DNA from: Amoebophrya sp. A120
Taxonomy: Eukaryota; Protista; Dinoflagellata
Direction of reading: 5' to 3'
Assembly: GCA_905178155.1 (NCBI GenBank)
Contig: CAJINV010000008.1
Coordinates: 3,522,013 to 3,586,012, forward strand
DNA: 64,000 nt
Under the pieces are notes generated by a model. The model searched no databases, had not been told where the DNA came from, and was given only the letters and a program-made list of their open reading frames with translations. Positions 23,540-61,597 of the stretch are shown one piece after another. The position numbers were made by a program, and so were the translations under genes. Each line of letters opens with the position of its first letter. Within the stretch, counting starts at the first letter, position 1.

Positions 23540-24775
23540 ATGCGCCGTCGCAAACCGAATGCAGATTTTTCATTACCGTCTGTGATGACACATAATATCG
23601 TGTCTTTTTCTTTACAGGGATCATGCACGTTCTTGAGAAGTATCGTTCTTGTCGCGTTTTTGCTCCTTTGGCAGCCAGTTGAAGAAATTTGCGCGGTCAG
23701 AACTGCCGCCGCATCCACTTCCGCGCTGCTTTCGGTGGCAAAGACAAAATCCGAACGACTTGCCGATGAGCGACGTGCGCGAACAAGAGTAGCTGTAACA
23801 CTGGACGACACCAAGGTGAAGCAGCAGCAGCGGCAAAAAGTAGACCAGCAGCAAGAGGAAAATGAAAGCACCCGAACAAAGCAGACGCCCCGTGGGTTCA
23901 CCGCCTGCCAAAACTTTCTCCGCAACCGCAAGGCGCAGCTGATCAGCGGCCCCGATCTCGTGCGGGTTGTGGAGTCGATGTGCCAGCCGGCTGTGTATCG
24001 AAAGGAAAAATCCCCCCTCCCCATATCAAAACGGAATTTCTCATGCTGGATTTGTGTACACAAATCAGCTTTGTATTGCAGAGAGGCATTGTGCCCAGAT
24101 CCCCAGGCTAGGGAGGGGCGTATGGGTCTAGTTGTTCAGCATGGAAAACCCTTTAGTCCCCAGGCTAGGGAGGGGCTTCCCTTTAGTCCCAACAGCATGA
24201 GAAATCGCTTCCGTAATATGCCGGAAGCTTCTACCCTTGTCTTCTTGCAAGACAAATGCGATTTGTGACCTCAAATCAACAACACAAATTTTCAATATGG
24301 GGAGGAGGGATTTTTCCTTACGATACTGTCACGAACGGGAACAGCTCCTACCGCTACCGGAAGGCCTTATCAAATGTAAAAATGTCTGGGTCTGGAAGAA
24401 TCCGAACTTGTGATGCTACATTTGGATTCCAAAAAAATCTGGCTTGCATAAGCAGCAAAGGGAATGCAATTTTGGCTACGCGGAGAGGGCATTTGCCATG
24501 CGGAATAGGCATCACAGAGCCCTCGAAAAGTCTGTGATGCTAGGGCATGCATCACAGACATCATGGCCCATGCAAAACGTGCATGACAAGTCTCAGAATC
24601 TTCCAGACCCAGACATTTTTACATTTGATAGGCCTGCAAGGAAATGCAAGCCGTCACACTGGAAAAGTACGGCCACGAGGTGGATTGGGACCCGGCCGCC
24701 CTGTGCCACGATCTGATGACGCGGTTTCATCAGTACTCGCCCTCGAACGCACAGAACTTCAACATGGATGGGTGA
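23540..24775 (+). CDS. Putative secreted protein with a Cys-containing C-terminal domain
   Basis: Hydrophobic stretch IVLVAFLLLW. Removing two IEs gives GFTACQNF...ESMCQPAVTNGNSSYRYRKACKEM...AALCHDLMTRF...MDG*. Confidence 0.6.
23996..24325. mobile_element. Introner element, family D
   Basis: TATCGAAAGGAAAAATCCCCCTCCCCATAT...ATATGGGGAGGAGGGATTTTTCCTTACGATA; DR ctgtg/ctgtc. Confidence 0.9.
24368..24630. mobile_element. Introner element, family A
   Basis: TATCAAATGTAAAAATGTCTGGGTCTGGAAGA perfect TIR; perfect DR ggcct. Confidence 0.93.
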
Positions 24776-40167: not shown

Positions 40168-41957
40168 AGATTCATCGCAATATCGTCCTACTTCTCGCGA
40201 GACTGCAGCTCCTTTGCGAACGAAGTGCAGTCATAGCCTTCAGCTTTATGAACGAACGATGGACAAATTAATACGTATCTCTGATCATGTGCGTAAGTAC
40301 TACTACGCAATGAGAATGAATTCTAAGTTTCGACTCAACAGAGTCAGTAAAAAGCGGATTATGATTGCCCGAAGCTGAAATAGGATGCATGAGCATGCAT
40401 GCTAGACGAGAAGAAGAAGAATCTTCTAGCCAGGAAGCGTTGTCATGCGATCGTGGATAGTACGCAGATACGATAGACCAATTTTTGCACAGGATATGCA
40501 AGTGTTGCGTGGAAGGCGCGGTGTGTCCACCCCCTCTGCTGGATGTCGTCAACGCGACCCTGAACGTAACAAGGTAGGAGCGGACGAGGCGTCTAGAAGT
40601 TGTGAAACAACTGCATTGGCGAATACTATGGCTTTTATCCATTTTTTCCATGGCACGAGTACCAGCTGCAAATTCAGGTTGCCAACCTTGGCAGGTATTT
40701 CTGCTGAGTATGTTGTCCTGATCAGGAGTTGCAGCAGCCAGGATCACGGAAGAACACTCTAGCCATGATGGCGATGAGACGAGCAACAGCAAGCCAATGT
40801 CGTGAATCTGCACAGAGGACTACACCACACTTGAAGTTGTAGTGTTTTTTCGTGCAACTACATGAGGTGTCAAAGAAATCGTAGTGCTTAGTGTGGTACC
40901 CAAGCTCAATCGAATCCCAGCACTGTTAGCACTATTTCTATTCTGCCCACGTCCAGAACCAGATGAACATTAGGGGTTGCTGTACCTTTGCTGCTCTACT
41001 CGTGTTCCAGTAATATTTATAATACGTACTTTCCATTTGTTGATTCAATGAGTGGAACATATCTATCGATTGAGTATATTGAATTGCCGACCCTCCCGCT
41101 AGTACGTTGCTGTGGATGTACTGCCGAACCGTTTGTTTGCTGTTGGGTCCCTCTCGTGCGGACGGCAAAAACGCAACCCTTTACTGGGAAGTTCTATGTA
41201 CGAAAACGAATGTGTCTTTCGATGATCTTGGCCTTGCTATTAATTAGCAAATACCGCCGCCCACACGGCGGTTCCAGCGTCGCTAAGAAGCTGAGCGACT
41301 GCCTGCCAAAAAGTTCGGACAGGAGTTGTCAAGTCTCTTTGATCATAGCAAGAAAGATCCCCGTTCGACACGGACTGTCCTTGCTTCGATCAAAACACCA
41401 CCCTTTGAAAGGCGCAAACAGATACAAGTACATTTCCGAAAGACAGAAGTCGAGTCTAAGTTTTCGGAGCTGTCCTTCTGTTTTTTTCCTTTTCTCTACA
41501 ACTTAGCGCCCGCAATGTCGAAGGTGATTGGGAATGAGGTTGGAATTGACGCGCTGCTGTCCTCGCGTTTAGGGTGACTGTACGTCAATTTTCGATGAAC
41601 AATTTTTCAAGCAGCTGCTTTAGCGATTCCAACTTTCATTGACTTCTACTTGAATTTATACATTTGATTTCTGATTGTAAAGATAAAAATAAGTACTATT
41701 ACCGGTTCCTCCTCCTCCTTTGTTTTAATAGAAAAGATCGGCTCATCTGTTGTAGTTCACCCGGTTTTTTTTGAAACAGAAGCTTTTTGAAAACAAGAAC
41801 GCCGCCCCAATTTACTTAGAAAGAGCGTATCACATCGCACCCGTTCGTGTCGTTCGAACGAAGAGAACAGGACCGACCGAAGAATTCGTTTTAATCTGAT
41901 CGACAACATTTCCATCAAGAATTTGGCGTTAGGGAAGATCGAGGAATTTTTTCCACC

Positions 41958-44900
41958 ATGGCGCAGCTACATCGCAAGAAGACCCTTATGAGTAGCAAGA
42001 AGAATTCGTGCTACACCGGGACGACTGGAGGGGGCCAGCCGGCTGCGGCTTTGTTGACGAGAGTGGTCGCTCTTGTGCCGATCTTGTCGTCTGGTTTGGG
42101 GTGCAGCTGGTGGTCCACGACCTCCACCGGGGGTCCGCAGGTGGCAAGCGGCGGCCTCATTGGTGTTGACGCCGTTCATCTTTCCCGCCGCGGTCCTGCG
42201 TCGAGGGCCGAGCAACAAGGCGCCGCGGGGGCCAAGAAAGGCACATCAAGCACGGTCAGCGTTTTCCAACGCAACCACTTGTTGCACGAGAAAGAGAACG
42301 AAGTCGACTACGACCTGTCCTACCAGGACTGGCAGGAGGTACTCACGCACGACAACAAGGACGAGATCTTTTCCTTCCTGGACCGCTACTACAAGCACGC
42401 GAACAAGGAATTCAAGGTAGAAATCGGCTCGAGTACCGTCGATGGCGTGCCCGAAGACTCCTCGGAACTGATCCAGATTCTCAAGTTTCTCCACGAGGAC
42501 AAGGAAGTCGTGAGCACTTTCGGCACGCGGTCCCACCCGACCATTATGGCGCAGCAGCAGGCGGACGTCGAGGCCAATAAAAAACATCAGAGAACATCAA
42601 GTGATGGGACCACGAACTCGTCCACGTGGCCCCCGTACAACCGCAAGTACAAGGGCGAAATTTTGGCGAAGCTGACCGGGGGCGACTGGAGCCGAGCCGA
42701 GCTGACCGATACCATCTTCAAAGCCTTTCTGGCGAGAGGCGCAGATGTGACGGCGTGGAAGATTCTGAAGGACTTGCTCACCATGAAGGGCGGCTGGACC
42801 ATCAATTACGACGGCTCCTACGCAATTTTCCTGGCCGGGCGTGAGGAGTCCCTGCTCGCTTCTAGTAGTGGCGGTAGTTTTGTTCTTGTGGCTGCTGCTG
42901 GTGCTGCTCGTCCCGGCACCAGCTGCACAACTTCTGTTGAGATCGCGGGTCGTGTTGATCAACATCTACTGCTTCCGGCGGCACAATCCTTCCTGGCGCC
43001 CGGGGGGGAGACGTTGCAGGCCGTGAGCCTGCTGGCCCCGTTGCGGGAGGCCAAGCAAGACGCCGCGGTGGCACTGCTGAAGCGGTTTCTGAAGGTAAGA
43101 GAGGGAATCAGACTAATAGAATGGAATCAGACTAATAGAATCAGACTAAATGTAGAATCAAACTAATGGAATCAGACTAGAGGTAGAATCAGAATAGTAG
43201 AATCAGGATAGAAGATAGAATCAAGATACTAGCATCAGAATTATGCATGGAGTCTGTGCCCATAGTCGAAGGTGCTCGCCGCGCATTTCTTTCTCTCTCG
43301 TCTGCATTGCACCCGTTGTCCCCCTGCGCTTTGGCCAGTCGTTTTCTCATAATTTCATCGCTCGGCTTTGCATGTTCGCTGCCGCGCATTTATTTGGGTT
43401 GAGATGGCCATGAGACTTCATTTGCATGCTGTGTATGCCTTCGAGTCGAACCACACTTAGACACAAGGGCGCAGGGTTCTGTTGTAATTCTCATGATTGT
43501 ATATCTTGGTTGTGCATAAGTTGTGATTGGCGATCCGTTGCGGCCACCGATCCCGGGTCGGCTTCTATCACAAGTGCCGGGACCTTGTTTGCCGATTTGT
43601 TTTCTCGTGACGGCACGGCTGGCAGACCGCACACGGATCGCGGACGACCGACGACATGCCGGCACAGGTACTACAGTCTTGCTTTACATTAAGTGCGGCT
43701 ACCATGATGCAGTAGCTGTGCTCTTTTTTTGGACGCAACTACGGATGACTTGAAATGAAGCGCAAGAGAAGTATGCCCTATGTCCATGCATGAAACCTCG
43801 CACCACCACCACGATGACCACGCACCTACGCGCAGCACCACGGAACTGGAAGGGCGACAGCTTCGCCCTCGCAAAGTAAGTTGTGCTCTCCGCTTGCGCT
43901 TATTTCCGAACGCATTGCGTCTCGCTTTATTCCTTGTTGAAGAGACAGAAAATCGAGCTCGAGATCAAAACCCGATGACACATGACGCAAGCGCGTGTAG
44001 ATTGGCTCAGAGCCCATGCGCTCGTCTGCGTATGAATAGCCACAGACTGACGATCCTGGTTTTTGATTGATGAAGACGTCGGCCGTTTGCTGTTTTTTTG
44101 ATTGATTGGTCAAGATCTCAGCCGCTTTTTTTGTCTTTTGGTAAACGAACGGATAGCGGCAGTGGCTCCCTTCTGTGATTCGTTTTGGAAAGCTTACGCA
44201 AGCATCTGGATTGTTGAGATTCGTCTATTCACTAGAGGAGAAAAAAGGCTAGAACTAGAAGTAGAGCGCTAAGTCTGGTAGTACACATGAACTCACCTAA
44301 ACGAAGACCACTCAGCTGGGCGGCATAGATAGAAGAGCACAAAGACGAGGCCCTGCCAGCGATGCACGACAAAGTTGGCAGCTAGCTGCCTGATCGCAAA
44401 AGGACTGTCGGTCCGTTTTCCTTCGCCTCCGTCCGTCGCTCGGTCAGGAAAGCATGCAGGCACAGGGACCACAGTCGCCGCCGCCGGCCTCGCGCAAGCT
44501 TGCCGAGCGGATAAACAAGATGTCCCAATCAGAACGGCGGCGCAAGCGGGACAAGGTGCAGAAGGAACTCTCGGCGAAGGAGGGCCTCCTGTCTGCCTTG
44601 GCAACACCGGGGGACGCCGGCGACAAAAGCGAGCATTATGGGACTCTCAAGCGTTACGGCTACACACTCAGCAGCTGCGTGGGTTTCTCATGAAAGACTA
44701 TTTTCGTGATCCGTCGGGCTAAACTACTTTATCACGCAAAGATACTTTTTGGCTTCGGTCGGGCTACTTAGCATCGCGAGTTCATCGATGTAGGGGCTGA
44801 GTGTGTAGCCAACAGCTGAGAACCCCATACACGCGCTGCCTCGGTTTCGGGTGCGGGGGACGGTGGTGCCAGTAATGTGGCAGGCGACAACGGGCTCGGG

Positions 44901-47900
44901 CCCCGAAGCAAAAAGCAGAAGCTTGCGCATGCGGTCGGGAAAAAAAACCTTTTCTTCGAGTTCGAAAAGCTGCCGGAACCATCGGGGAACACCCCGAAGC
45001 GTGGGCGGCCGAAGAAGAACCCTCCGGACCCCCTCGCGTTGCTGGATGGTGACGCCGTCGCAGGTACTTTAAGTATAGTGGATGAATCGATAATCAAGTA
45101 AATGGATATCAATCATGAAAATGAAAATCGACGAAAATCGATGGCGGTGTGAATAATGTATCCAGAACTCTCAAGCTTCAGCAAAAGGGTCTCGGTCTCA
45201 GTATCGTAGTTGGAAATCAATCATAAAAGAGGTGCGTCGCAGTATGAGCTCATCAATTGGGTATGTCAGTGCAAAGATGCCGGAGCGTCGTCCATAGTGT
45301 ACAAATAAATCGCGCGCCATGCCTTTTTTGGCTACCAGTAGCACCTTGCGCCGATGCTTTTCGTGAATGATCGCGCGTGCCCTAGACTGAAAAAAGCGGC
45401 GCCGTCGGGGGAGGGGCTCCCGGCCCAGCCCTCCGCAGGGGGGCCGCAGCGCGCCGTCGTAAGAGCCAGCGCATGGCGGGCGCGGTTTAATTGAGCGCCA
45501 CTGAGTGTCTGTAGGGGCCGCTAGCGGCGGCGGCATTTGTGGCCGTGAAGTGGCAGCGCTCTCCCTTCTTATCGCCCCCCCGCCTGCCGGCTAGCAGGCG
45601 TCGTAGTAGATGGGGCGAAGGCTGGGGTGTGTGTCTTTCAAATTGCGGCGTCCCGCATTCGGATTTTGCCCTGCGAGGTCCGAATGCGAGTGCAAACAAT
45701 GGCCCAGACAAGGAGACTGCGATGGTTTGCATTGCTTGCCTTCCCCGCACCAGCGGAAGCTGGAACTTCGACTCTTGCGGCAGAGGCGAAGTTCCGGCTT
45801 AGCTTCGCCTTTTCGACAGAGGCGAAGTTCCGGCTTCCGCTGCGGAGAAGACAAGCAAAGCAACCTCCTTGAAGAAAAGAAAAGCTTGCGCTGACTTTCA
45901 CGCGGCGGAAGTACAGACTGCGCCTCCTGCGAAAGCGGCGAAGCTGCAGTTCCGGCTTTCGTTGTGGGGAAGAGGGCGAGCAAAGTAACTTATTTGAAGA
46001 GCAAAAGAGCTTGGGTTGACTTTCGCGCCGCGGCCGCCGGAACTTCGCCGCTGTCGAAGGAAGTGCAGGAAGCTCCGGCTCCCGCAGTGTACATGTTGAA
46101 GCCGGTCGTCTTCCAATATTTTGCGCGGACGCCCGTCCGCGCCGATCGGTGGGCTGGCACAAAATGCCATCAGGTGCTTGCCGAAGCCCTTCATAGTTCC
46201 TCGCGTAGCTAGCAGTCGTGGCCGGTTTGCGGGCCTTCAGCAGCAGCTCCCGTTCCGTATCCCCGTACTGCCGCTCCGTTGGCTTGCGGCTGGGGACGTT
46301 GAAAGCCGCCGTCGTTCGCGCGGCATCGTCGTACTTCACCTCGGCGCCCTGATTCGTGGCCCGCTTCAGCATGGTCACGGTGAGGTCGTGGGTGAAAGCA
46401 AACACGATGCTACTGCCGTGCTGGCGGCCCTACGGCCGGAGAGGTTCATTGTCCGGACTACCATCGGGGGCAGCAAAGTTCCAGAAAAATGCGACGCTTT
46501 GCGATCTCTCTTAGCACTGTTGCGGTTACGCCAAACGGCTGCACCGCTGTAAAAAGGCTGACTTATACTGAAAACCAGCCATCGGAAAAGACCCAGAAAA
46601 ATGGACCGTTAGCCCCTGTCTAGATACGAGCCCACGACTGGCGTCCTTTAGGTAGAAACTGAAGCGCCCTTTACAAAAATACGGAAAGACATAGCCTCCC
46701 GCCCTGTCTAGATAGGAACGGAGGCCCTTTTCAGGCGCGGGGAGATCAATATTCCCGGACTTTCCAGGAAAATCCTGGCAAATCTCGCGCCCCCGGGCGT
46801 ACTCCAACGCTCACGCTCCACGCGCTGTAGAGCTTGCTTGTCTTCCCCGCAGCGGAGGCCGCAACTTCGGCTCTGTCTAAAGAGGCGAAGTCCCGGCTTC
46901 CGCTGCGCGGAAGGGAGGCAGGGCAAAGTGTGGAACGACTTCAACCAAGACAGAGCAGCTGCAAAACTTGGATGAATAAAGGACAGGAGCAGTGACATTC
47001 TGAGACAGTAGCACTTAGGGCGAAAAATAGGCTACCACTACCCGCTGCGCTTTTATTTGCAAAGCTTTTTCACTTCGGATTTTGGATGACCGTTTCGAAG
47101 CCACGGGGGGCGTGGCGTTTACAGAGACGCGAGCAATTCACTCCCAGGTCTACCCCTGCTAGTTGCGGACGATCAGCAGCAGGACGCTCTATGCGTGGCA
47201 GATGTGTCTATGTCTGGCGCTGCGAGATCTGGACACGACAAGAGTTGCGCATTCTTCAGAGGATGCGTCAGCTTTTTCTTTTTGCTCGTTTCGAAGGGTT
47301 TCCGGTCATGGAAAACGCGGTAGATCTACAGCGTAGTTTTGCATGACGCCTGCTTCACTGCCTTCTTCAATCAGACCCAGACGCATTTGCATCGGATACG
47401 CCGATGGAGGTCGCAATGGCGCCGCGGCCGACAGCGAATCCGATGCCCCGGCTTTGACGGTGGAAGTCACCATTTCCGCGGGGTGGCAGCAGGACCTTGG
47501 CGGTGCCCGAAAGGCTATTTTAGAACGAATGGCGGCGGAAGCCGGCGGGCTATGGACCGTGAAGATCACAGCGGAGACGGGGCAGACGACGGTCTTCTGC
47601 CGTAATTGCCTCAGCATAGCGAAGGGCGGCGAGCGGGAGTGTAAGTACAAGCTGACCGGGACGATGCCAAAGGGCAACCGGGGCGGGACCCTCGAGCTGA
47701 CGGCGAACAACTTGAAGCATGGCACGCGCTTGCCCGGTGACCGCGCGGGAGCTCGCCGCCGGGCACTGCAGATCTCGGCCGCGAATCCCGAGATGGCCGC
47801 TGGCTCCATCGAGACCATGATGTACAACGAGACTGGGATATTTCCACACGTTGGCGATGTTCGCAGTGCTGTCAAGGATGTTCGGAAGAAGTTGCAGTCT

Positions 47901-50900
47901 AAAAATGCAAAGACCGTTGCTGCCATCATGGACTTGGCGAAGGGCAACCCCGTGCCCGCGGCTCCATTTGACCTCTCCAACCTTTCGCCGGCTCCGTATT
48001 GTTTCCTTCTCGAAGAAACAGGCTGCTACTGGACGAGCGACCTGCTGCTGGCCGTTTTCGCGTTTTACCATTCTGTGGCGTTGGGACAAGATCGCAACCC
48101 GCATCAAATAAAAGCAATCCACGCGGGTGATTGTTGCCATGCAGACACGACGGCGCAGGAGGGTCGGCCAGCTATGAAATTTGCCGCGGTCCCGATACTA
48201 TGGATTGCAAAAGTGTCTGGGCCTGGAAAGAATGGAATGCGTGATGTTACATTTGGATTTATTTTTATAAAAAATCTGTATTGGATGAGCAGCAGCAGAA
48301 GCCTAGTTTTTTCTACGGGAAGAGGGCACTTCTCATGCGGGATAGGCATCAGGACGGCCTCAAGAAACCTGTGATGCTGGGGCAGACATCGCAGACATCT
48401 ATCTTGGGTCATGCAAAATGTGCATGACAAACCTCGTATCCTTCCAGACCAAGACATTTTTGCATTTGATAGATACGGAAAACCCCGGAGGGAGAGTATT
48501 GCCTGACCGAACTGGTCGGGTTTTTAGCGTGGGTCGTCGAGGAGCAGACTGCTACTTACGAGGTGGGAATGCAGAGCTTTCTGCGTCTTCTGGAGAGCCG
48601 TTGCGGTGTTTCGGCGCTCAACACTGCCGTCGCGGCCTGGGACGGAACCCCAACAATTAGCCAGGCTCTGTTAGACCGTGTCTACCGCCCCGGGAAGAGC
48701 GCAGCGGCGTTGGTTTCCAAAATCGACCCGATGAAGGCAGTTGCGACGAAAGGCAAGCGACCGGGGGAGGGAATAAAAAGCGAAGCGGATCCGTTTTTGA
48801 GCGACGCGGAGTCCCTTTTCGATGAAGATGGTGGCGACTTTGTGGACCCCGGCACGCGTCCGATCCTGAGAAGGGATTTGCCACATATCGAGAGGACAAC
48901 GGTGAAGCATAAAGTCGGGGCGTGGCAAGGCGTATGGCGCTGGCTTCCGTTCATATTGGACCCACGCCTTTTTAGTGCCGCGGCCTGCCTCCTCCTGCAG
49001 CGCGTCCGCAGCCGAAAAGAAAAAGACTTCCGCTACCTCTTGGGCACCAAATTCGACACGCTGCCGGATGGGACCTTTGTCGCGAAGAGCGGTTGGTGCA
49101 CCGGAATGACTGGCATGGACTTCAAGACGCCCCGGCCCCCGTACGCGGAGCAGACGACCGAACGCGCCTGGGGTGTTGAACAGATGCAGAGGGACGCGGC
49201 GAGGAAGGCCAAGGACCCAATCCAACACTTCGGCGTGGAAACTGCCAAACACTACCGCAACCGAGGGTATGTCGAGCAGCAGTTGCGTTACGAGACTGGT
49301 CCCGCCGGGAACGCCGTCCCCAAACCGACGGGCCGATACCTGTTGCGGTGGGATGCGCCGCTCGTGGCCGAGGTCGCGGGGCACTCCAAATCCGTCATCA
49401 GCTGCAAAAAGAAGGCGAGCGTCCGACATTTCGCCCCCGGCAGCAGGTTGGGAGAACAGTACAAAGAGCTCAGCGGGGAACAGCTCCGGGACCGTGTGGA
49501 AAAAGGCGAAATAGAGATCCACGAGCGCTTTCTCGGGGAAGATGAAGAATACCTTGTTACAGTCCTCCCGAACTACGTCCATTCGAAACAAAAAAGCGCC
49601 CCGGCGCCGCCGAACGCCCTTTCGCTTGATCTGGCATGCTGGTTGTTGACGACGGATTGCTCCCCCGGGAAGCCGAACTACAAACCCCTGAGCGACTACA
49701 GGCCCGGAACAGCCGAGGCGCGGCACCACTGGAAGAAGGTGCGGAAGCTGATGGGCGAGTTCCGGGAACTCCAGCGGAAAAAGCAGCAGGAGGGCCAGGC
49801 AGTTCCTGTAGTGGACTTCGATGGCTTGGGTGGTGGGAACCCAGAGGCCGGGGAGGCGGGTTCCGGCGAACCTCCGCAGGAAGATGCGGCGGAAACGGCC
49901 GCGGAAGCACAGCAGGCCGGTGGCGAAGCTTCCGGAGGACCTGCGGAAGGGTTCCTGCCCGCCGCGAATGCAAAAGCCGCTTCTGGTGATTCCTTCCGCG
50001 AGCAACGTGTGGGTGTGGACGCCACTGTGCATGCTGCCGGCAATACCAACAACAAAGAAGTGATGGACTCGGACGTGCCAGACTCAGAAGCATCGGGGGA
50101 CGACCCGCACGGGCCGCCGCTTGATCATGCGGTGAAGAGCAGTAAGGAAACGAGAAGCCTGTTCTTCGCCCAAGTACTGGGGAAGAAGAACATGAAAGCG
50201 GCCGGGCTCGGTTTCAGTTCGCAGCGTGCGGAGCCGAAGGGCAAGAGGATGGGCGCAAGTGGTGGAAACGATGACGGCCCCGCCTATCAAATGCAAAAGT
50301 GTCTGGGTCTGGAAGATTGCGAGACTTGTCATGCTTGTCTGGCATGACAAAAAAGTTTGTGATGCGTGTCCAAGAAGTAGAAGAGACCCTTTTCCGCCCT
50401 TCTGCCTGTCATGCAAAAACGCAGTTTCTCATGCGAAAAACGTAACAAAAAGAACTACAGATATTTCTCATGCTTGGCTGCGCATTACAGAGCATTCACT
50501 GTTCCCAACACAGCGTTACAAGTTTCCAGACCCAGACATATTTGCAGTGCATACCGCCGCATACGATCCGAAAAGATTGCAGTTGATGGCCGTATCTGCT
50601 GATTGGGTGTTTGGGTCTGGAAAAGTGCCGATGTCGAGTCGGTCTGTGCATGCTTTCGGTCGTATGCAGGATAGTGATTAGGGTGTGAGAGTCGCTGGCG
50701 TGGTCGCTTCCTGACTCGACATCCTCCAGGCGGTGCGACCATGTCATGTGCTCAGCTGGCATCTGCGTGATGTCATGTAATCTTTCACTTTGCATCTGCA
50801 CTGCTCTTCCAGGCTCAGACACATTTGCGGCCCATACTCGACTGGTGATGACTTCGACGCACAGCTGGCAGACGATGGAAAGTATTCTTTCGGCGAGGAA

Positions 50901-53900
50901 ATTCAAATTTTGGGAGGTGGCGGCAGTACTGACGCGCGGGGTCCGAAGGCAGGCGCTGTGATGGCAAAACGCGAAGAAACCTCGCTGAGTGAAGATTCCC
51001 TGTCCGAGAATTCTGAGGATGACTTGGAGGCGCTGAAGCTGAAAGAGCGAATCCGAAAACTGAAAGCGAAGATGAAGGAGAAGCAGGAGCGTCGTCGGCG
51101 GCGCGATGCGGAGCCGGGTCGTTTGGAGCTCCCGACCACAAGCAGCGGGCACGGTCTTGGAGTCTCTGGCGCCGTCGGGATAGAGGACGGCGAGATGCAG
51201 GACGTCGAGATGCAGGACGTCGAGATGGAGGATGTCGAGATGGAGACGGGGGACGACCCCGACGTCGAGACCCTCGACCAAAAGCCTCCCCCGACCACAT
51301 CTACGTCGCTGAGTGCCGGAGCGAAATTTGCGCAAGCCGCCAGAGCGAAGCTGACGCACAGGGACGTGCTGGGGATCCGGGTAAAGGTTGAGCTGGTGGA
51401 AGTTCTTCCGGAGAAACCGGCGGACGAGGGCAGTGCCGCAGCTGCAGCCAGTAGAACAAGCGTTGCAAACACGACGGGAACTGGTGCAGACGCTGCCACT
51501 GCAGAAGCGACGAAGATGACGCCGGAGCTAATAACTTTGAAGCCAGTGCAACTATCCGGAACGAAGAAAAAGCCCTCCTCCCCATATCGAAGTCGCAATA
51601 TGTGATCCAGATTTCCACAAATCAGCTTTACCATACTAGAATGAAGGGAGCAGATGCATTCCTCAAAACCACACTTGTGCCGTAGCGCGTACGTCGCGCC
51701 TTGTCCGCATCTAAAGCCGCGGCTTGCGCGCCTTGTCCGCGTCTAAAACTGCGGCTTGCGCTCGGCTCTATATGTTTGTAAAGCGGCCGAATCCTGTTTC
51801 TTGTTTCTCTTTCGCCTAGTCCTCTGCTGACCTTATCTTGATCACCTCGCGCCAGATACCATCACAGTAGGCAGCACACCAAACGCCGCCGCTCTGGTCC
51901 ATTTTTCTGGAACTTTGTAAGTCTAACCGGCGCGCCTTGTCCCCATGCTATGGTGGACAATTCGCGCCAAGTAACGTAGAAAGCAGTAGGAATGTGGCTG
52001 CAAAAGTCTGGAACCTGAAGAACCCTTGCTCCAAGTCTTCAAAAGTAGTGCTGCGACTTTCAAGCTTAGGCCTCGCCTTGTCCCCCTCTGTTTCTGGTCT
52101 CGGGCTCCTCTTCACAGGGATACGGACCAGGGCCAGGCTTTCCGTTGTCGGCAAGGCGGGAACGTCGTGTCTCGTCGCGGAACGGTGCCGCTACCGGCCG
52201 GCGACGTCCACTGTTCGTCTCTAGACACGGCGGCGTGCTCGACTGGGCTCGCAAAGGTTCTCGCATTATGCTCAAAAAGTTGCGCGCTAGGCCGTTCCGG
52301 AACACAAACGCGGTCGCCGGGCCCGACAGCGTGCTACTATGCTTCTACGGTATACGAAGCAGTGAACTATTGCGGTAGAAGCGCGCTTGTTTGTAGTCCG
52401 AGCGAGGTGCTCGAGCGTCTGAAGCCCTTCTGTAGTCAGACAGCATTCTGTAGTCAGAAACGGCGCTGGTGTTCCTTCGAGCGTCTGACCTATGTGATTG
52501 ATCGGTGTTCTCCGTCGCGCGGAGGAAAGCAGCATCACAAATTTTGGCTTCGTTACGGGAAGGGGGGCGCTTCCTCACAATAGCAACCGAAAATCACATT
52601 CCAGCGCCTTCCTACCGAAGAGGAAAAGGAAGCTGAGGAGGACGAGCGCCCGGCTGTTCTTGCGGCGCCTTCGGCTTTCGAATACTGGCGCGAGCTTTAC
52701 CCGTATCTGAAGATGAAACTTTTCAAGAGCGCGATTCTCGTGCCGTTCAACGACGACGACAAGTTTGACTTTCAGGAGGGCCGCTCCCTCCGCGCCGCGC
52801 TGGTCGATCTCGGTGTCGACGCGGACGACATTCTGCTAACCCTGGGCATCCCCGCGAGATTGTTGCAGAAACCGGTGCAGTGGGTGGACAAGGAGAAGTT
52901 CGAAAAACATCTGCTGCAAATTGCGCCGAGGCCTCCCCTTGGGGAGAACCCAAACCACGACGGATCTCTGCAGGCGGAGGCTGAGTTGAATCGGGACGAA
53001 GACGAGGTCATTTGCGATTCCGCAAGCGAGAGCGCCAGTGCCAGTGAGGGGGAGGAAGATGACAACTGCTCGCCATTCCACTCCGTTCAGTTTCTCCGGG
53101 ACTTCGGGTTAAATTGTGCGGTCGTCGTCTCTATTCATTGCAAAAGTGTCTGGGTCTGGAAGAATGTGGGATCTGTGTTTGTCATGCTAGTCGGGCATGA
53201 CGCTGGGCTTTGCATTGCGTGGCCAGCAAGAGCTCCTCTTGTCATCGTCTGTCATCTTGTTATGCGGAATACGCAACACGGAGCCAAGGATAAATCTGTC
53301 ATGCCTGGCGATGCGTTACAGTGTGCTTTATTTAGATTTTCACTGAAATGCATCACAAATTTCCAGACCCAAACACCTTTGCAATTGATAGCCTCCAAGG
53401 TCGAACGGGACCCGCGCACCAATGAGGTGATCAGGCTTAAGGCGAAGGCTTGCAGTTGTCCCAGATCTTTGCATATCTGGTTGGACTGCAAGCACACATT
53501 TTATACCGACACCTGGACGGCGGAAAAAGACCCGAAGGGCAAGCGCGGCCGCAGGAAGGGGACGACCGACGCGCAGAAGGGCGCGGAGACCTTCCTGGAG
53601 GGTGTTGCGGTTGCGCGCGCCAAGGAGAAGGACAAGAAAAAGGCAGAGGAGGAAGCCGCCGCGGCGGCAGCAGAGGCGAAGGAAAGGAAGCCGCTGAGAA
53701 GAAAGGCAATGGGGTGGAAGGAGATGAACCTGCAGAAGTACGCTCTCCAGTGCCCCGACCCCCCGACGCCCTGGACGGCCCTCGCGCGGCCAATCTTCAA
53801 ACGCTGGCTCGATGCGGGTTTTTCGTTGCGGCTCTTTCAGGTACATGCTGTTTTGCTTTTTCAGTTGGGGTAACATGAATCTCGAGCAGCAGCCTCATCG

Positions 53901-56900
53901 CGACTATATAATTTCCAACGCGAACAAAGTGACTCGCGCAGAGCGCCATTCTCTTTTCTTCAATGAAAACGCCCTGTGTTTTCTATCAGTCTCACCACGC
54001 TGAACATGCAGCGCAAATACCAAATAAACAGGTTTCCCAGGCCGGGATCGGCTTGAGAATGTTCACCAAGGCGACGCAGTTTGGAAGCTACGCCGAGGCC
54101 ACGGAAGTCCAGGCGGTTGCCAAAGGTCTGCTGAAGCAGAAGAAGGAAGGCTTGTTGGAGGAAGAGGATGCGACGCAGGGCGCCGACTTTGCCGATGTTG
54201 TCAGGGCCGTCGTGGACACGTTGAACAGACCCAGCGCGCACGACGTCATCTCCCACCTGCTTGCGGAGGGCGAATCAAGGAGCAAGACTTATTATGGCCA
54301 CTACAAAGGCTGCACGGGCCCGAAGTTGCGCGACGTCCTTGGGCAGGCCGTCAACTGCTTGGTCGCCATCAATGTTCTCGCCGTCCAGCACCTGAAATTT
54401 ACGGACAGTCGCCAGCGGCGCGTGGAATATGATGCCCTTTTTGTCCCCCTCCGGGAAGCAGCAGCGTCTTCGTCGAAGCCAGCCGGCAGGGGACAAGGCA
54501 AAGCGCCAGCTGCGCAACCGCCGCCGCCAGCTGCGCAACCGCCGCCGCCAGCAGCTTCCTCGAGCCGCAACAGCCCGAACATCTCCACGGACACCGGTGC
54601 CAAGAGTAAAAATGCCGGCGCGGTGATATCCTATGGAAAAGCGCACCCATTACAGAGCGTGTGCCTACACCCGTGCTGTCATGGTCTAGGGAAGAAGTAG
54701 GCGCATCTTTGTCATGTGTGTGGGCTCCTGAGTCGAGACATTGTTCTCCTTGCAGTGGGTGATCTTCTTCAGAGCGGGAATCTGTTTGCATGAAGATTTC
54801 ATTTGCAATGGCATCCCTAGCCCCCAAAAAGAGATCGCAATCTGTAGAGTGGGCGCTTTCTCTTAGAGGATACCGAAGCAGCAGCTCCTCCGTTGTCCCC
54901 GCCCAGGCGAAAAAGGCTCCGGTCGTAAGTGGTTCCAGGGGTGCTGTGTTTCCAACGAGTTCAATAGGTCCGTTCCCGGCGGCCGGCTCCAGTGCCGGTG
55001 CGTGTAGTACTATCGTAGTGCTTTTAGATTGCTTTCCAGTAGCTGTCTGCTGTAGCATCAAAGAGTTTTTCCATCGTCCACACTCTAGCGGCACAATTTT
55101 CCTGGCTCGCGCGAATTTATTGCGTGTGATAGTTTGCTATGCCGTTTGCAATACAAATCCATGTGTCTGGTGTCGGAAATTAGCAAGCCTTTTCATGCTG
55201 GTCTGTATTGCGAGGCCCCGAAGAAGTCCTCCTGCTTGTCATGACAAAACGCCGCTTCTCATGCGGAGCACACATGCAGCACAGAGTGGGGCTCGCTCGC
55301 ATCATACAGCACAACTTTCCAGACCCAGCAGACGCATTTGCACGCAATTTGCACTGAGCATACATCTCAACACAATAAACAGGACAAGGCAGTAAAAGCG
55401 AGGCTGGCAAGGTCAAGTCCATTCCTAGTTCTTTCGCCAGCGGCAACATCAAGGACAGCAAGACCGCCGCTGCAAACTTCGCGGCCCCATCGGTTTCAGC
55501 GCGCCCCGGCAAAGAGGTCAACAGGACAGGCGCTGCAAGCTCCACAGCCCCATCGGTGTCAGCGCGCCCCAGCAAAGAGGGGAACAAGACCGCGGCGGCA
55601 ACCCTCGGAGCTCCATCGGTGACGGCGTCGGCGCCCGACGGCGAGTAGGCGTCGGGGAGGCTTTTGATTTTGAAGTTGACGGGAGATGTAGACAGAGCGT
55701 GCTCGTTGCGAGTCTTTACTGTGTCCTTTTTCACATTCTACCTACTTACTAACTTGGGCCATCTACGTTCATCTCGATTCATCTGCTTGTGCTCTTTATT
55801 CGTGCCTACCGCTTTCATACTCATTTACTGACTCATACTTGAGTAAGCCACTCACTCGTTATCAATCTGCTCCTCTACCACCACAGCTTCTTTTTGTAGA
55901 CGGAGTCACACTCTTCAGAGCACTTTTTTGAAGACGAATGAAAGCAGACGCAAAGGCAAAACGCCCCGCGCGACTTAGATACAGCGACGCTATATTATTT
56001 CGTCTATGTGCCCCGTGCTTGAGTTTGAATTTTGTTGCGCTCGGGATTCTATCTCTATCCGGTTGAGGAACGAGTGCGGCGGTGTAGCTGATTCCTGTGG
56101 GGTTCTTGTTGAGGGATGGCCGACGTGCTGCACGATTGCAGTTTGCAAGGAGTACCTGCGCACCGTGAGCGGTTTGCAAGTTAAGGCGGCGCGCTTGAGA
56201 GGTGTTATAGTCGCAGTTGAGTGCCCTCTCTCTTTGGAAGGCGCCCGAGGAGGACGAAAACTTGAGAGGGGGAGACTTCTCCAGAGGGTTGCCTCCCGAC
56301 GTTCCGGCTGCGTCGAGTAGTTCAGGCGACTGCTCTGTGTCGCAACTTGGAGTCGAGCGGCCGTGCCCGCACGTGAGCAGAGCTTGCGAAAAAATGAGGC
56401 GGCAGGCTATGCCATTCTGTGCAAAAACGTCCCCGCCTCGTAGTCAAGGTGGCAAATCTGCAATACAAATCCAGGCTCTGCTGGGAGATACGCATGACAA
56501 ATTTGCATCTGCAGTGTCGTGTGGGTTAGCAAGGAGGGGGAGAGCCGCATCACCGCGGCGCCTACGCATCCTATTCATGGCATTTATTACAAACCCCCGA
56601 ACCAACACGACTGCAAGGTCTTTTCGTGCGAAGGTTCTTCTGCAGTTTTTTCTGTTGATGCAAATCAGCATATGGGGCGGGGACGTTGTTATCCAGGATA
56701 TGTGTGCTGGTTCGCTCGGGACTCAAGCAAAGCAGCAGGCCGGTTTTCTGACAGTTTGCCGAGAGAGACGGGTGAGAATCTCGCGTGGGGGTCTGGCCGC
56801 GCATGATTGGGTACGTACGCATGAGACGAGCCGACGACGCCGTGGTGGAGGCCCAGCAACAGCAACCTGGCGCAAGAATGGGGCGCAACGGTGGTGCGAG

Positions 56901-59900
56901 GCGCAAAGACGTTGCTGTGTAGATTCTGCGCCAATCATTCTATTGCGATTCGGAACCATCTTCCAAAAAATACAAATCTCAGGTAGTCCCCCGCGGAGTC
57001 GATAGATTGTCGCTGCGAAGCCTGACGCGCTTACGGAAGCAGACTGCCGGTGGCGGAGTGGCACTGGGTCGCAGGGTCATAGAAGATGGCATCCAGGTTC
57101 GACCAGTTCGTGGATAACTAACAGCACGACAGAACTTTCGCTCTGCCCACGGAAAGATCAGCAGCGGCGACACGACCGAGCACGACAACAAACTACGACC
57201 AGGCCAGATCACGGATTCGATGCTGCAACGAAACTAGCCTGATTCCACTAGTCTGATTCCATCCGTAAACCTGATTCCGATACGCGGATTCGATACCTTA
57301 GCCTGATTCCGTTAGTCTGATTCCATAGATAAGTCTGATCCCGTAAATGCTTTAGTCTGATACCATCGACGACCGTTTCTGAACGCGCAGGACAAAGAGC
57401 TCCCGAACAAGCAGGTGGAGGCCATTTTTAGCAGCCGGAACGAGGCTCTCATGCTGTTTGCTCTACGGAACTGGAATGGGTTGCCCCGGACCCGTATCAA
57501 ATGCAAAAGTGTCTGGGTCTGGGAGGTTGGAGCTTGTGACGCTAACTTTGGACTCTAAAAAAATCTGTATTGCATGATCAGCAAGAGGAGTCTAGTTTGT
57601 GCTACGCGGGGAGGGCATTTGTCATGCGGAATAGGCATCCGGAAGCCATTGAAAAATCAGTGATGCTAGGTCATGCATTACAGACATCCTGGGTCATGCA
57701 AAATATGCATGACACTTCCGGCAACATTCCAGACCCAGACATTTTTGCATTTGATAACCCGCTACGACCTCCTGCAACTCGCGGACATGCAGAGCGATCC
57801 GCTCCTTGCCGCCTTGCGCGATCTATCAAATGCAAAAATGTCTGGGTCTGGAAAGTTGGAACTTGTGATGCTAACTTTGGACTCTAAAAAAATCTGCATG
57901 ACCAGCAAGAGGAGCCACATTTGTGCTACGCGAGGAGGGCATTTGTCATGCGGAAACGGCATCAGGAAGCTTTCCAAAAATCTGCGATGCTGGGTCATGC
58001 ATTACAAGCATCATGGGTCATGCCAGACAAGCATGACAAGCCTTCCATTCTTCAAGACCCACACATTTTTACATTTGATACGATCCGCTCCACGAAGATA
58101 TTAAACCCTCCGCTTTTCACGGAATCGTCGGAGAGGACTCCATACTCAAGAAGAACAGCTGGTTATTGACGACTCCGGCCGACGTGCAAGCCGTCGCGCC
58201 TCGGAGCTGCCCGCCGGCGGTGGGCGAGCACCTGGGAAAACCGGCGCTGGTCCGCCTGGGTAGTGCCGTCGATCAGGCCCGGCTCCTGCGGTACGTGCAG
58301 AAGTTCGCCAACGCAGGAGTAGACCTCCACCTCTCGAAGAAGGTGAAACCGTTCGAACCGCTGATCGTGGAAGATTTTCTGGAGCTGCTTACCAGCGTCA
58401 CGTTGTATGCATTGCAAATATGTCTGGGTCTGGAAACTTGTAATGCTAAGTGACGTAGCATGAGGAGCCCACAATAAATGATTGCCTAGCATGACAAGCT
58501 TCTGAGCTTCTAAGTGTTGCCTATTCGGCATGACAAACTCCGACTTCGCATCACAGAAAAAAAGGGTTTTTGGGTACCGTGCATGACAGACTTGAAAGTC
58601 CTGCTAGCCTAGCATGACAAACCTTGCTTTTTTCCAGACCCAGACATTTTTGCATTTGATATCACGGACGGAAACGGGAAAACCAATCTGGTGAAACACG
58701 AACCATTCCTGCTCAACCTGCTCGACCACTACCGGGTCAAACTGCCCGTGCACGTCTCCACAAAGGTGTTGGAGCAGTTCTACGAGACCGAGAAAGCCTA
58801 TGGAACTGTCAGGATCGAAATCAAGAGAGTCGAAATAAGTAATTTGTGATGCATAAAAGCGAGGATACCAGTTGGACCCTCAGACTCAGTTTGTTTCCAG
58901 GTGGCGCGTGACGAATTTCGGGAGCACCAAGATCCAGTCTGTCGCGCTGTTTGCGCAAAGAAGACGGCTCCTGTCATGAAAACTCTGGCAGTCCATCGTC
59001 TTCCCCTAAACAGGCTTGCGATTGGTCTCATTTGCCTGCTCCCCAACACTGGCCTTACGTGCCCTACATTTTATGCATACACAACTAACTAAACTTTTGG
59101 ATTTTGTCGATTTTGATCCTGGCACTCCCATAAGGTTGACGCAGAGGCGGCTGCGCTCACCCTGCCTGCGGACGGTCCAGCACTTGACCAGGAGGCGGCC
59201 GGGGCTCGGAACCGGGTTATGGCGTTCTCAACTGTTACATTCTCAACTGTTACACGGATGCGTGATGCAAGAATGGCAAAAGTGAAAGGGGTCACCTTGC
59301 GGGTCTTGCATGACAGATCTGGCAAAGATTCCGAGCCTGTTTGGCTCTTCGAGAATTTGTCATGCGAAGCAGCTTGATCGTGTCGATTCTGATTGTGATT
59401 TTGCATTTACAAATCATGTAACAGTTGAGAATGTTAATGTAACAGTTGAGAACGCCATACGGGTGCTGGCCAGGTTTCTGTCTCTGCCGCGGCGCGATTT
59501 GACGACCCACAGTATCCTGAGTAAAAACGTACCCACACCATAGTCAAGATGGGGAATCGGCTAGACAAATCCACAAGTTTTGGCTGTTTTGCATGACAAA
59601 TTTGGATTCGTAGTGTAGTGCTGTTTGAGCTAGCTAAGCAGCATCACAGATCTAGCATACCATGGTGATTGGAGCATGACAAATTACAAAACACGACTAG
59701 AAAATGCTTCTCATGGGGCTCCGCATGAGAAACATTTTCAGCATGCAGATTTGCATTACAACTCTGGTGTGGGTACGTTTTTACTGAGGATACACACCGT
59801 GAAAAAGTTGTTGGAGGAAGCGGAACTGGAAATTGTCGAAGGTTGCATCGTATCAACTGTAAAAATGTCTGGGTCTGGAAGAATGCACGTTTGTCATGCT

Positions 59901-61597
59901 AAGTCTGAAGCATGCAAAAATCTGTGTTGCATGATTACCAAAAGTCGTCCAGTTTTGACCAAGTCGGGAGGGAGTTTCTCATGCAGGATAAGCATGAGAG
60001 AGATCGCGCAGAATCTGTAATGCTAGGCTCTGCATTCCAGACCTCATGGGTCATGGAAAAGCTGCATGACAAATCGCGCACTCTTCCAGACCCAGACATT
60101 TTTACAGTTGATACATCGCTATCAACTCGAATGGTACGACAACTGCTACAGAGTACGACACTGCAGCTACTTCCGCTGCTGCTGCAGCGCAGGCGGGAGA
60201 AGTGGAACAAGTGGTAAAGGGGACCACGGACAAGAACAACTCCACGGCAACTTTTAGTACAACAACTCGCCGCAAGACGAGCAGCTGCAGCAGCCCCCGC
60301 ACCGTGGCCAGTCTGTCGATCGCAAAAAACCCGTTCAAGCTCCGCATTCTGCGGGGTCTGTATACGCAGCCCGGCGCTTGGAACATCGAGCGCGACGTGA
60401 CGATGAGGATCTGGAAACATGCCGGCATCGACGTGGACACGCCGCAGAGCCAGCTGGCGCTGGCAGCACTGAAACTGTTCGATGCCACCACCCAGATGCA
60501 CCCCGACCACATCGACGCCATCCTCTCGACCAAGAACACCGACCTGATGTACCACCTGCTGGACACGTGGGACTTCCCCATTTCGCACGACCAGTTCGAC
60601 GAGCTGCTGAACTTCGATTGGTGCTTCGGCCTTCAGCCGTGCACAAAGCTGACATCATCTGCGTGCACAAAGTTGACATCATCTGCGATGTCGGCTTCGT
60701 CCTCTGCCGTTGCAGTTTTCAGCCTGGATGCTGTCCCGGTGGGAGTTCTTCCCTCCCCGGTCGTGGGGAGTTGTACATCAGCACGGGCCGCCGGGGTAGC
60801 AGCTGCACTCGTCACAGGCGAAGAGCAGGGGCGGGGCAACAACGACGGCAGTACCAATAGTATGCCCACCGCGACGACGAGGAGCACCGGTGCGGCTGAA
60901 GAAGCGTGTTGCGGAACTACAACTTCGCCCCCCACTTACTACTACACCAACCGGGCAGGTGGCATCAAGGTGATTGCCAAACTGCTCACCAAGTGGCAAC
61001 CCAACCTGACGGCGGAGCAGGCCGCGGGCCTGCGTCGCAGGTACGCGGATTCTCCGGTGTCCGACTTATCAAATGTAAAAGTGTCTGGGTCTGGAAGATT
61101 CTAGACTTGTAATGCTGTCTCTGGATTCCAGAAAAATTTGTATTGCATGACCAGCAAAAGGCCTCCAGTTTGTGCTACGTGGAGAGGGCATTTCTCATGC
61201 GGTAGAGGCATCACAAAGTCTTCTAAAAATCTGTGATGCTAGGGCATGCATCACAGACATCATGGGTAATTCAAAAGATGCATGACAAACCTGGCAATCT
61301 TCCAGATGACCCAGACATTTTTGCATTTGATACGACTGGGTGACCAGCAAGTACGGTGGTGGTGGACTTTCCGCCAATGAGGTGATGTTACTGGAAGAAA
61401 CTACCCAGGGCGGCCCAGAAGTAGACGGGCTGCAAAATGCATCCCGGCAACACCAGCAGCCGCAAGTAGAACCTCAGCCGCTCGGTGAAACGGAAAGTAA
61501 AAATCAGGGTGACGGAGGACAAGTCGACAATGAAGCTGCTGCTGCCGATATTGCGAGAAAAAAATCCCTCATCCCCTATTCAGCACAGGATTTTTGA
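41958..61597 (+). CDS. Unknown ~1046-aa protein with N-terminal hydrophobic segment; host of the 14.3-kb MULE and 8 introners
   Basis: Exon 1 41958-43094 (..LLKRFLK) resumes at 57391 (DKELPNKQ..). A stop-free frame continues through nine short exons after IE removal to TGA 61595-61597; exon sum 3141 nt is divisible by 3. Confidence 0.7.
43105..43240 (+). repeat. Left subterminal GAATCAGACTA-like tandem motifs
   Basis: Multiple GAATCA(G/A)ACTA units; mirrored at 57234-57362. Confidence 0.85.
44454..45101 (+). pseudogene. Degraded accessory ORF in the MULE with an AT-hook (PKRGRPKK)
   Basis: Coding-like fragments (SQSERRRKRDKVQKEL..., GNTPKRGRPKKNPP) separated by stops and frameshifts. Confidence 0.35.
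45732..46927. repeat. Dispersed hairpin-forming repeats inside the MULE (45732-45858, ~45900-46080, 46834-46927)
   Basis: TTGCTTG..TTCCCCGCAGCGGA..GC..AACTTCG / CGAAGT(T/C)CCGGCTTCCGCTGCG..AAG..A.GCAA arms are inverted within each copy. Confidence 0.6.
46080..46546 (-). pseudogene. Degraded ORF divergent from the transposase
   Basis: FWNFAAPDG...RP*GRQHGSSIVFAFTHDL...ARKPATTASYARNY then frameshift to KGFGKHLMAFC; high GC3 codons; in-frame TAG. Confidence 0.3.
47343..55648 (+). CDS. MULE (Mutator) transposase with SWIM zinc finger, ~1789 aa (exons 47343-48198, 48477-50284, 50559-50592, 50842-51552, 52588-53131, 53396-53840, 54041-54626, 54878-54997, 55383-55648)
   Basis: N-terminal zinc-finger-like VFCRNC...ECKYKL...NNLKH. 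MULE core AGD...LAWVVEEQTATYEVGMQSFL...AAWDGTPTISQAL, RRDLPH in the CxxH position, W...EQTTERAW (third E). SWIM CSCPRSLHIWLDCKH at ~53451-53495. Exon sum 5370 nt with no internal stops. Confidence 0.82.
48199..48471. mobile_element. Introner element, family A (within transposase DDE core)
   Basis: TATGGATTGCAAAAGTGTCTGGGCCTGGAA...TTCCAGACCAAGACATTTTTGCATTTGATA; perfect DR gatac. Confidence 0.9.
50285..50553. mobile_element. Introner element, family A
   Basis: TATCAAATGCAAAAGTGTCTGGGTCTGGAA...TTCCAGACCCAGACATATTTGCAGTGCATA; perfect DR ccgcc. Confidence 0.9.
50593..50836. mobile_element. Introner element, degenerate family A
   Basis: TATC...GTGTTTGGGTCTGGAA / TTCCAGGCTCAGACAC...CCCATA; DR eroded; removal +5 bp restores frame. 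Confidence 0.65.
51553..52582. mobile_element. Long (1030-bp) introner, family D-like
   Basis: TATCC...AAAAAGCCCTCCTCCCCATATC / GGGAAGGGGGGCGCTTCCTCACAATA; perfect DR gcaac; removal joins PVQ to PKITFQ...MKLFK. Confidence 0.75.
53132..53390. mobile_element. Introner element, family A
   Basis: TATTCATTGCAAAAGTGTCTGGGTCTGGAA...TTCCAGACCCAAACACCTTTGCAATTGATA; DR gtctc/gcctc. Confidence 0.88.
54627..54872. mobile_element. Introner element
   Basis: TATCCTATGGAAAAGCGCACCCATTACAGA / TCTGTAGAGTGGGCGCTTTTCTCTTAGAGGATA; DR eroded; frame restored. Confidence 0.7.
57234..57362 (-). repeat. Right subterminal TAG(T/C)CTGATTC tandem motifs
   Basis: Reverse complement of the left GAATCAGACTA array. Confidence 0.85.
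57495..57756. mobile_element. Introner element, family A
   Basis: Family A TIR; perfect DR acccg. Confidence 0.92.
57824..58080. mobile_element. Introner element, family A
   Basis: Family A TIR; perfect DR cgatc. Confidence 0.92.
58406..58661. mobile_element. Introner element, family A
   Basis: Family A TIR; DR tcacg with an extra ttg on the left. Confidence 0.88.
58799..59132. mobile_element. Introner element, family B
   Basis: TATGGAACTGTCAGGATCGAAATC...GATTTTGATCCTGGCACTCCCATA; DR eroded; frame restored. Confidence 0.85.
59218..59459. mobile_element. Introner element, family E (reverse orientation to 19419)
   Basis: TATGGCGTTCTCAACTGTTACATT...AATGTAACAGTTGAGAACGCCATA; perfect DR cgggt. 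Confidence 0.93.
59513..59792. mobile_element. Introner element, family C
   Basis: TATCCTGAGTAAAAACGTACCCACACCA...TGGTGTGGGTACGTTTTTACTGAGGATA; DR cacag/cacac. Confidence 0.92.
59851..60113. mobile_element. Introner element, family A
   Basis: TATCAACTGTAAAAATGTCTGGGTCTGGAAGA perfect TIR; perfect DR catcg. Confidence 0.93.
61067..61332. mobile_element. Introner element, family A
   Basis: Family A TIR; perfect DR cgact. Confidence 0.92.

Follow-up and report, generated by a model that had tools for sequence, protein, structure and literature searches.

The window analysed here is a 64-kb stretch (C8:3522013-3586012) of the 115,520,608-bp assembly of Amoebophrya sp. A120, and positions given without a contig refer to it. 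It holds a DNA transposon of 14,281 bp that interrupts a coding exon of a host gene, and transcripts joining both halves of this host gene exist. We think it probable that the element is removed from the host message at the RNA level, a transcribed footprint in DNA being the main rival. The main features of the element are these:

43085-43093: left target site duplication GTTTCTGAA, perfect over its 9 bp and identical to 57375-57383
43094-57374, + strand: transposon, with termini common to nine short copies
43095-57366, + strand: the 14,272 nt absent from the joined transcript, starting GTAAGA and ending ..ACCAT; the loose end behind 43094 reads 57367-57396
43104-43239, + strand: left subterminal array of GAATCAGACTA-type repeats (tandem arrays, motif scan)
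57233-57364, - strand: right subterminal array, inverted relative to the left array (inverted pairs, tandem arrays, motif scan)
57375-57383: right target site duplication, identical to the left copy

The joint was seen when reads or contigs of public runs were placed on 41800-47700. In run X1, a contig of depth 19.4 covers 41800-43094 with zero differences and then runs on as CGACGACCGTTTCTGAACGCGCAGGACAAA, letter for letter the window sequence 57367-57396; this joined form, 43094|57367, is the deepest assembled piece in X1. A second X1 contig, of depth 6.5, begins 30 nt upstream of 43094 and enters the element, its coverage reaching zero by about 43.97 kb. X1 consists of assembled contigs with the tool label "RNA?", and we treat it as RNA because about 2.5 kb of zero depth stand beside the 19-fold exons and because two skips equal joints of the annotation. 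Both skips are on one 212-nt contig, the first a GT..AG skip of 2,084 nt and the second a skip of 214 nt that corresponds to a miniature inverted-repeat transposable element (MITE) plus 5 nt, and both are found in the RNA-based annotation (protein P0005, see below). This behavior of X1 argues for RNA.

The 5′ edge of the joint is a consensus donor, AAG|GTAAGAG, beginning at the element's conserved second base. An earlier note on this DNA, made from the sequence alone, had pointed to this same donor (AAG|GTAAGA, at 43092-43100), and it is indeed the left edge observed. The 3′ edge, ..GATACCAT|CGACGACC, lies 8 nt before the element's end. Here the note had chosen a CAG acceptor, with 43095-57390 spliced out and 43094 joined to 57391; that CAG exists, ending at 57390, 7 nt past the right duplication, but it is unused, the observed acceptor side being 57367 and the boundary pair GT..AT. 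The joined message retains G, CGACGACC and the second duplication (1+8+9 = 18 nt), in frame; a remainder divisible by three has a chance expectation of one in three. Relative to the inferred empty site ..KRFLNAQDKE.., itself in frame by codon bookkeeping, the joined product ..KRFLKRRPFLNAQDKE.. has six extra codons (KRRPFL). It is thus neither two residues shorter, as had been predicted from the CAG, nor the result of an exact removal of element plus duplication, the other outcome that had been considered.

Downstream of the joint the host gene is itself interrupted by introners, that is, spliceosomal introns made by transposons (Huff 2016; PMC9860276; PMC12130899), here MITEs. Its parts are as follows:

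41958-43094, + strand: host upstream coding exon, 379 codons (open frame; X1 contig depth 19)
57367-57494, + strand: host exon 2, made of the element's final 8 nt (CGACGACC), the second duplication and host coding sequence (..RRPFLNAQDKELPNKQVEAIF..) (joint and frame)
57495-57761, + strand: introner MITE and one 5-bp duplication ACCCG (predicted intron)
57762-57823, + strand: host exon 3, 21 codons, in phase
57824-58085, + strand: introner MITE and 5-bp duplication CGATC (predicted intron)
58086-58402, + strand: host exon 4, 106 codons, in phase
58403-58666, + strand: introner MITE and 5-bp duplication TCACG (predicted intron)
58667-58849, + strand: host exon 5, whose frame is open until the stop at 58847-58849 or else another intron

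The 379-codon upstream frame enters the element and stops at 43164-43166, in agreement with the claim that a host coding sequence is interrupted; it is annotated as the 402-aa P0001, which runs to this stop, 72 nt inside the element. The roughly 670 stop-free host codons claimed downstream were not found, as translation from 57391 meets a stop at 57554-57556, after 55 codons. From the joint, 229 codons lead to the stop at 58847-58849 once three introners of about 260 bp are removed by a rule (the element plus one copy of its 5-bp duplication); these removals are predicted. We tracked frame continuity exon by exon, carrying 0-2 bases of split codons, and found no stop in the host frame over 379+42+21+106+60 codons, across the observed joint and the three rule-based MITE removals. 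The idea of a giant intron in a host gene therefore stands insofar as an X1 contig joins the halves in frame, while a transcribed DNA footprint remains its rival.

The host protein is encoded at a single locus with no paralogue in the genome, and no homologue of 208-663 aa was found among 5.8 billion proteins; a search with exon 4 likewise found no homologue. Its exon 2 motif VEAIFSSRNEALMLFALRNW recurs as IDAILSTKNTDLMYHLLDTW in a downstream open reading frame (ORF) at 60202-61104; a weaker occurrence lies in an open frame of 1,039 aa on a different contig. Written as [VI][ED]AI[FL]S..N..L(M)..L..W, the motif stands at 57409-57480 and 60550-60630 in the window and weakly twice in G000:C3:11932957-11934201; it could represent a repeat domain in a family of orphan proteins. 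From the sequence, the host gene may continue beyond 58849, toward the ORF at 60202-61104. A contig of a public metagenome collection, JACKZZ010013799.1 (L027), is 98.7% identical over 4.27 kb to window 38278-42534, where it ends before reaching the insertion site, and the estuary metatranscriptome X5 contains pieces of the host exon (42453-42738) at 99%+ identity. Close relatives of the strain, expressing the host gene, thus occur in environmental data.

The element boundaries were confirmed by its relatives. Nine shorter copies of 1.7-2.5 kb, on seven other contigs, have termini (GGTAAGAGAGGGAATCAGACT.. and ..TTTAGTCTGATACCATCGACGACC) identical to those of the element, the match extending over 21-24 nt, and six of the nine are flanked by 9-bp duplications (8-9/9 match). 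The shared termini and the duplications mean that the boundaries are not due to chance, and the earlier description of an element of about 14.3 kb with a 9-bp duplication and inverted subterminal arrays is correct. The genome search that the note had called for thus does yield further elements, but none in coding exons: the targets of the short copies are AT-rich (AATAATAAT, ATTTTTTAT, TTTTTTTTC, GAAATTAAA), and at none of the nine does a long open frame abut both sides. The donor-like terminus, with the consensus donor from the second base, is conserved in every family copy. The terminal inverted repeat of the element is imperfect (GGT....GA.GG.ATCAGACTAA) and is followed by the inverted subterminal arrays, in which GAATCAGACTA occurs as seven + strand copies in 43105-43210 and six - strand copies in 57235-57363; this sequence is absent from the rest of the 64-kb window at 0 or 1 mismatch. 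As RNA, the two ends are predicted to form an imperfect duplex of about 170 bp, at -140 kcal/mol vs -57 +/- 6 for shuffles.

The window copy is the sole full-length copy in the genome, and its interior (47343-50347) is single-copy apart from an inserted MITE. We take the element to be a cut-and-paste DNA transposon of recent insertion and the master-like copy within a small family; it looks young and potentially active, with its perfect duplication, its intact expressed gene and end fragments elsewhere at 95-99% identity. Contig C1 was considered as a second full copy and rejected, as it shares just ~1.06 kb at the left end, with 95% identity over the first 536 bp. One locus (L022, G000:C7:1513067-1515170) is a deletion derivative in which 53922-55316 (92%) is fused to 56652-57374 (97%), with the right terminus intact and a different flank. 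Another (L016, G000:C11:978469-982693) holds two identical 1,794-bp family copies, 2,431 bp apart, with identical flanks and no target duplication; this pair is a tandem segmental duplication of element and flank, not two insertions.

We propose the following course of events. A transposon, probably of the Mutator/Foldback type, would have landed, in sense orientation, in a coding exon of a host gene that is an orphan. The host gene is transcribed into the element, and the absence of 43095-57366 from most X1 molecules would reflect removal from RNA by the tolerant machinery that handles this genome's thousands of hairpin-ended non-GT-AG introners, with the long inverted subterminal arrays probably bringing the two ends together. 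Unprocessed molecules would reach the stop 72 nt into the element and encode the annotated protein of 402 aa. The element's own gene of ~1,800 aa is transcribed and spliced independently within the giant intron. We favour removal at the RNA level because the donor is canonical, because the ends pair strongly, because this genome removes hairpin-ended non-GT-AG elements, and because the ratio of unprocessed to processed forms resembles that at an ordinary intron in X1 (unspliced vs spliced depth 2.9 against 5.8, a ratio of the same order). That so long an intron is absent from the annotation is explained by the published pipeline, whose introns were limited to 10 kb.

Several points weigh against this interpretation. 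The joint comes from one contig of one run, X1, whose RNA status is guessed by the tool and backed by the internal argument given above; the raw-read RNA runs X10 and X11 have zero reads on 41800-47700 and hence provide no test. The unjoined form makes up about one third of the X1 signal, the joined form being about twice as abundant. The 3′ boundary AT|C lacks an AG, which is unusual for the spliceosome and also fits imprecise DNA excision. Finally, genome, protein and metagenome searches found no empty-site allele and no ortholog uniting both host halves.

Imprecise excision is the objection that survives best. The joined form would then be a transcribed DNA allele whose footprint, 1+8 element bases between both duplications, adds 18 nt in frame. 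The 3′ edge, without an AG and inside the terminal inverted repeat, suits such an allele, both duplications are kept at the junction as in excision footprints, joined and unjoined forms coexist in X1, and the element looks young and potentially active. However, the assembly carries the insertion at a single locus, and there is no footprint contig in the genome. The footprint would also need to be the majority allele, the joined form being about twice the unjoined in X1, and its left edge would have to fall exactly at the consensus donor G|GTAAGAG. An ordinary intron in X1 shows an unspliced:spliced ratio of the same order (2.9 against 5.8). Moreover, footprints of hairpin-forming transposases (hAT, Mutator type) usually retain flanking bases, not 8 element bases. 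We consider a footprint allele unlikely.

Doubtful to a somewhat greater degree is an excision from RNA that is guided by structure and not by splice-site recognition, in which the ~170-bp stem would set staggered cuts after 43094 and 57366 and the termini would be tuned to leave 18 nt. If this were true, any sense insertion into a coding exon would keep the frame, and the element would be a genuinely self-concealing autonomous introner, the largest known. Self-concealment by design, which the earlier note had advanced, is unsupported because the other family copies lie outside coding exons, in AT-rich non-coding DNA without abutting ORFs.

It is improbable that the joint, although produced by real RNA processing, has no biological meaning, the 402-aa ORF and the downstream exons being separate or decaying units and the joined message a by-product. 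In favour of this, the host protein is without a homologue anywhere searched, its annotation ends at 43166, and roughly one third of the signal continues into the element; yet no stop breaks the frame over four junctions in a row, the reconstructed empty site is in phase, and the exon 2 motif recurs in the ORF at 60202-61104 and weakly in the 1,039-aa frame elsewhere. An artefact, either a reverse transcriptase jump across the base of the end stem or a chimeric assembly, is more improbable still: the ends can form the ~170-bp duplex, the joint with its non-canonical ends lies at the stem base, and contigs only, no reads, were seen, but an assembler working at k=31 would find no common 30-nt word by which to merge the two sides, the joined path has the greater depth and a consensus donor as its left edge, the reading frame survives, and reverse transcriptase jumps usually use short direct repeats, both of the 9-bp repeats being retained here.

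Removal at the RNA level, the reading that we prefer, would place the element beside the introners. Like them, it is a DNA transposon with a target duplication in an exon, brings its own donor and is absent from the mRNA; the leftover in the message is a multiple of three, as in Aureococcus, whose introners add 4+8 = 12 nt in frame (PMC9860276). Exonic insertion, absence from a joined transcript and a kept frame are all found here, the absence being due probably to removal from RNA, less likely to a footprint in DNA. In contrast, introners are families with many near-identical copies as introns in unrelated genes, whereas this element has one genic copy and its nine relatives lie in AT-rich non-coding targets; introners measure tens to hundreds of bp as a rule, vs 14.3 kb here; and the 3′ boundary here is non-AG and inside the element. 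The earlier note took described introners to be small, non-autonomous elements, a premise now outdated, as autonomous elements of the terminal inverted repeat (TIR) and long terminal repeat (LTR) types generate introns, those of Amoebophrya A120 included, and A120 is explicitly named as rich in diverse introners (PMC12130899).

Non-canonical introns make up over 60% of those in A120; they have hairpin ends and boundaries whose position varies relative to the stem, and many belong to repeated introner elements, which carry terminal inverted repeats and short direct repeats (Farhat 2021; PMC7789003). Our element, in the same genome, shares with these the inverted repeats near both ends that are able to form a hairpin, the non-GT-AG boundary dinucleotides and the varying position of the cuts relative to the stem. 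It differs in that they are 40-1000 nt long without coding capacity, whereas 14,272 nt with a ~1,800-aa gene inside are removed here, and in that their 3-5-nt direct repeats overlap the boundaries so that the original sequence is restored, whereas both copies of the 9-bp repeat stay in the mRNA here.

Exon insertions of maize Ds, dSpm and Mu are spliced by way of sites in their termini, as Wessler and others reportedly found in the late 1980s. These cases are alike in an imprecise removal from pre-mRNA with a donor in the element end, a few codons gained or lost and partial gene function, and unlike in being mostly small, non-autonomous and GT-AG, as against 14.3 kb, gene-bearing and GT..AT.

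Within the element, on the host gene's strand, lies a complete and expressed gene, six of whose introns are MITE introners:

44970-45063, + strand: exon with the AT-hook-like KRGRPKK; the start may lie further upstream (RNA contig; annotated partial protein P0005)
45064-47147, + strand: GT..AG intron of 2,084 nt (RNA contig joint; same in P0005)
47148-47188, + strand: 41-nt exon (RNA contig; P0005)
47189-47402, + strand: introner MITE removed with CT..CC ends, element plus 5 nt (214 nt) (RNA contig joint; P0005)
47403-55645, + strand: remainder of the gene, with exon C (47403-48197) followed by the P0002 exons (annotation mapping) and five further MITE introners at about 48.2, 50.3, 50.6, 53.1 and 55.1 kb

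That a complete gene is nested on the same strand, as the earlier note held, agrees with the annotation and with expression. The published annotation splits this gene (44970-55645) into two fragments: P0005, a partial protein of 175 aa with the joints 45063|47148 and 47188|47403, and P0002 (CAD7958590.1 / GSA120T00005880001), 1600 aa, with + strand exons from 47928 to 55645. Since the two share one open frame in exon C, they belong to one gene of roughly 1,800 aa. Besides the N-terminal AT-hook-like KRGRPKK, the protein has a Cys/His-rich stretch.

The claim that the gene encodes a Mutator transposase found no support from Pfam, NCBIfam, PDB or predicted folds. Pfam searches with 10 large ORFs and 10 exon-level pieces gave no relevant match at E up to 10, Pfam and NCBIfam searches with P0001, P0002, P0004 and P0005 gave none, and PF10551, PF00872, PF03101, PF03108 and the NCBIfam models remained without a match even at E = 10. 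Whole-genome scans for PF10551 and PF00872 returned zero matches, and a PDB sequence search with P0002 only a chance hit. In the ESM Atlas, exon C gave sub-threshold leads only, to FAR1, MULE and FLYWCH clusters at 0.84-0.89, and P0002 residues 1-480 no usable match; AlphaFold models of P0004 plus P0002 and exon C were unusable (pLDDT 32 and 36). The sole outside homologue is P0004, a 248-aa protein of Amoebophrya AT5.2, found by phmmer with exon D against 1.84 billion representatives, where the other matches were the protein itself and one repeat artefact. P0002 and P0004 conserve GDCCH(A)D, (F/W)DGT and DL(P/A)H(I/V)ER, which by eye resemble the D, D, (C/D)xxH of hAT- and Mutator-type transposases.

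We lean tentatively towards the Mutator type for this element on the basis of its 9-bp duplication, its Foldback-like ends and the weak language-model leads. In common with Mutator (MuDR/MULE) and Foldback elements it has a 9-bp target duplication, within their 8-11 bp, ends of inverted tandem subrepeats, short non-autonomous derivatives that share its termini, and a protein with an N-terminal AT-hook and a Cys/His-rich stretch, in which motifs resembling D..D..DxxH can be picked out by eye. Unlike Mutator, it shows no recognisable match to a MULE/Transposase_mut DDE transposase (PF10551, PF00872) at E up to 10.

Two further loci resemble the element's interior. At G000:C8:2215282-2219123, 6 kb from the short family copy C8:2207579-2209289, a divergent relative has 70% identity to the left internal region; at a distance of 3.5 kb from this, an open frame of 142 aa shows 34% identity to the putative catalytic core (P0002 residues 42-135). 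The locus may be a second, older autonomous lineage. At G000:C11:2744934-2745740 (- strand), open frames of 676 and 938 aa contain a stretch with 74-79% identity to the element's protein at residues 863-1061; either the element captured a host gene, as Pack-MULEs do, or part of the element's gene was domesticated.

If removal takes place at the RNA level, the locus would show in progress the first step in the birth of an intron from a full-length transposon that carries a gene: a young insertion, with the host message still in frame and the nested gene expressed from the new intron. The tolerant intron-removal system of A120 would then be able to act over 14 kb, and the 10-kb limit on introns in the published A120 annotation would have truncated at least one gene. 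A120 encodes a transposase-like protein with matching non-autonomous derivatives, contrary to PMC7789003, which reports none in A120 and which looked for introns of at most 10 kb. That transposons, autonomous ones included, make introns and leave multiples of three has already been published (Gozashti 2022, PMC9860276; Gozashti 2025, PMC12130899). New at this locus are the size of 14.3 kb, the GT..AT boundary pair, the annotation correction and a nested gene, complete and expressed, that in turn contains many introners. With one copy alone in a coding exon, the element does not behave as an introner family, and it is an instructive case, not a new concept.

The MITE introners of the window belong to one family with the terminal inverted repeat TATCAAATGCAAAAATGTCTGGGTCTGGA, 5-bp duplications and a length of about 215-270 bp. 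There are 14 copies in the 64-kb window:

13194-13463, 24384-24614, 36139-36378, 47189-47402, 48198-48472: introner MITEs
50283-50555, 50595-50830, 53131-53391, ~55100-55335, 57495-57756: introner MITEs
57824-58080, 58403-58661, 59850-60110, 61066-~61330: introner MITEs

A first look at the genome gave more than 5,000 candidates for this family. The copy at 47189-47402 is shown to be removed, as the element plus one duplication, with CT..CC ends. A second repeat family is present in the window at 37.7-38.2 kb and at 59.4-59.8 kb, the latter between host exon 5 and the ORF at 60202-61104; its repeats have short ORFs on both strands (..SGVGTFLLRI.. / ..KNVPTPEL..) and are probably another introner family.

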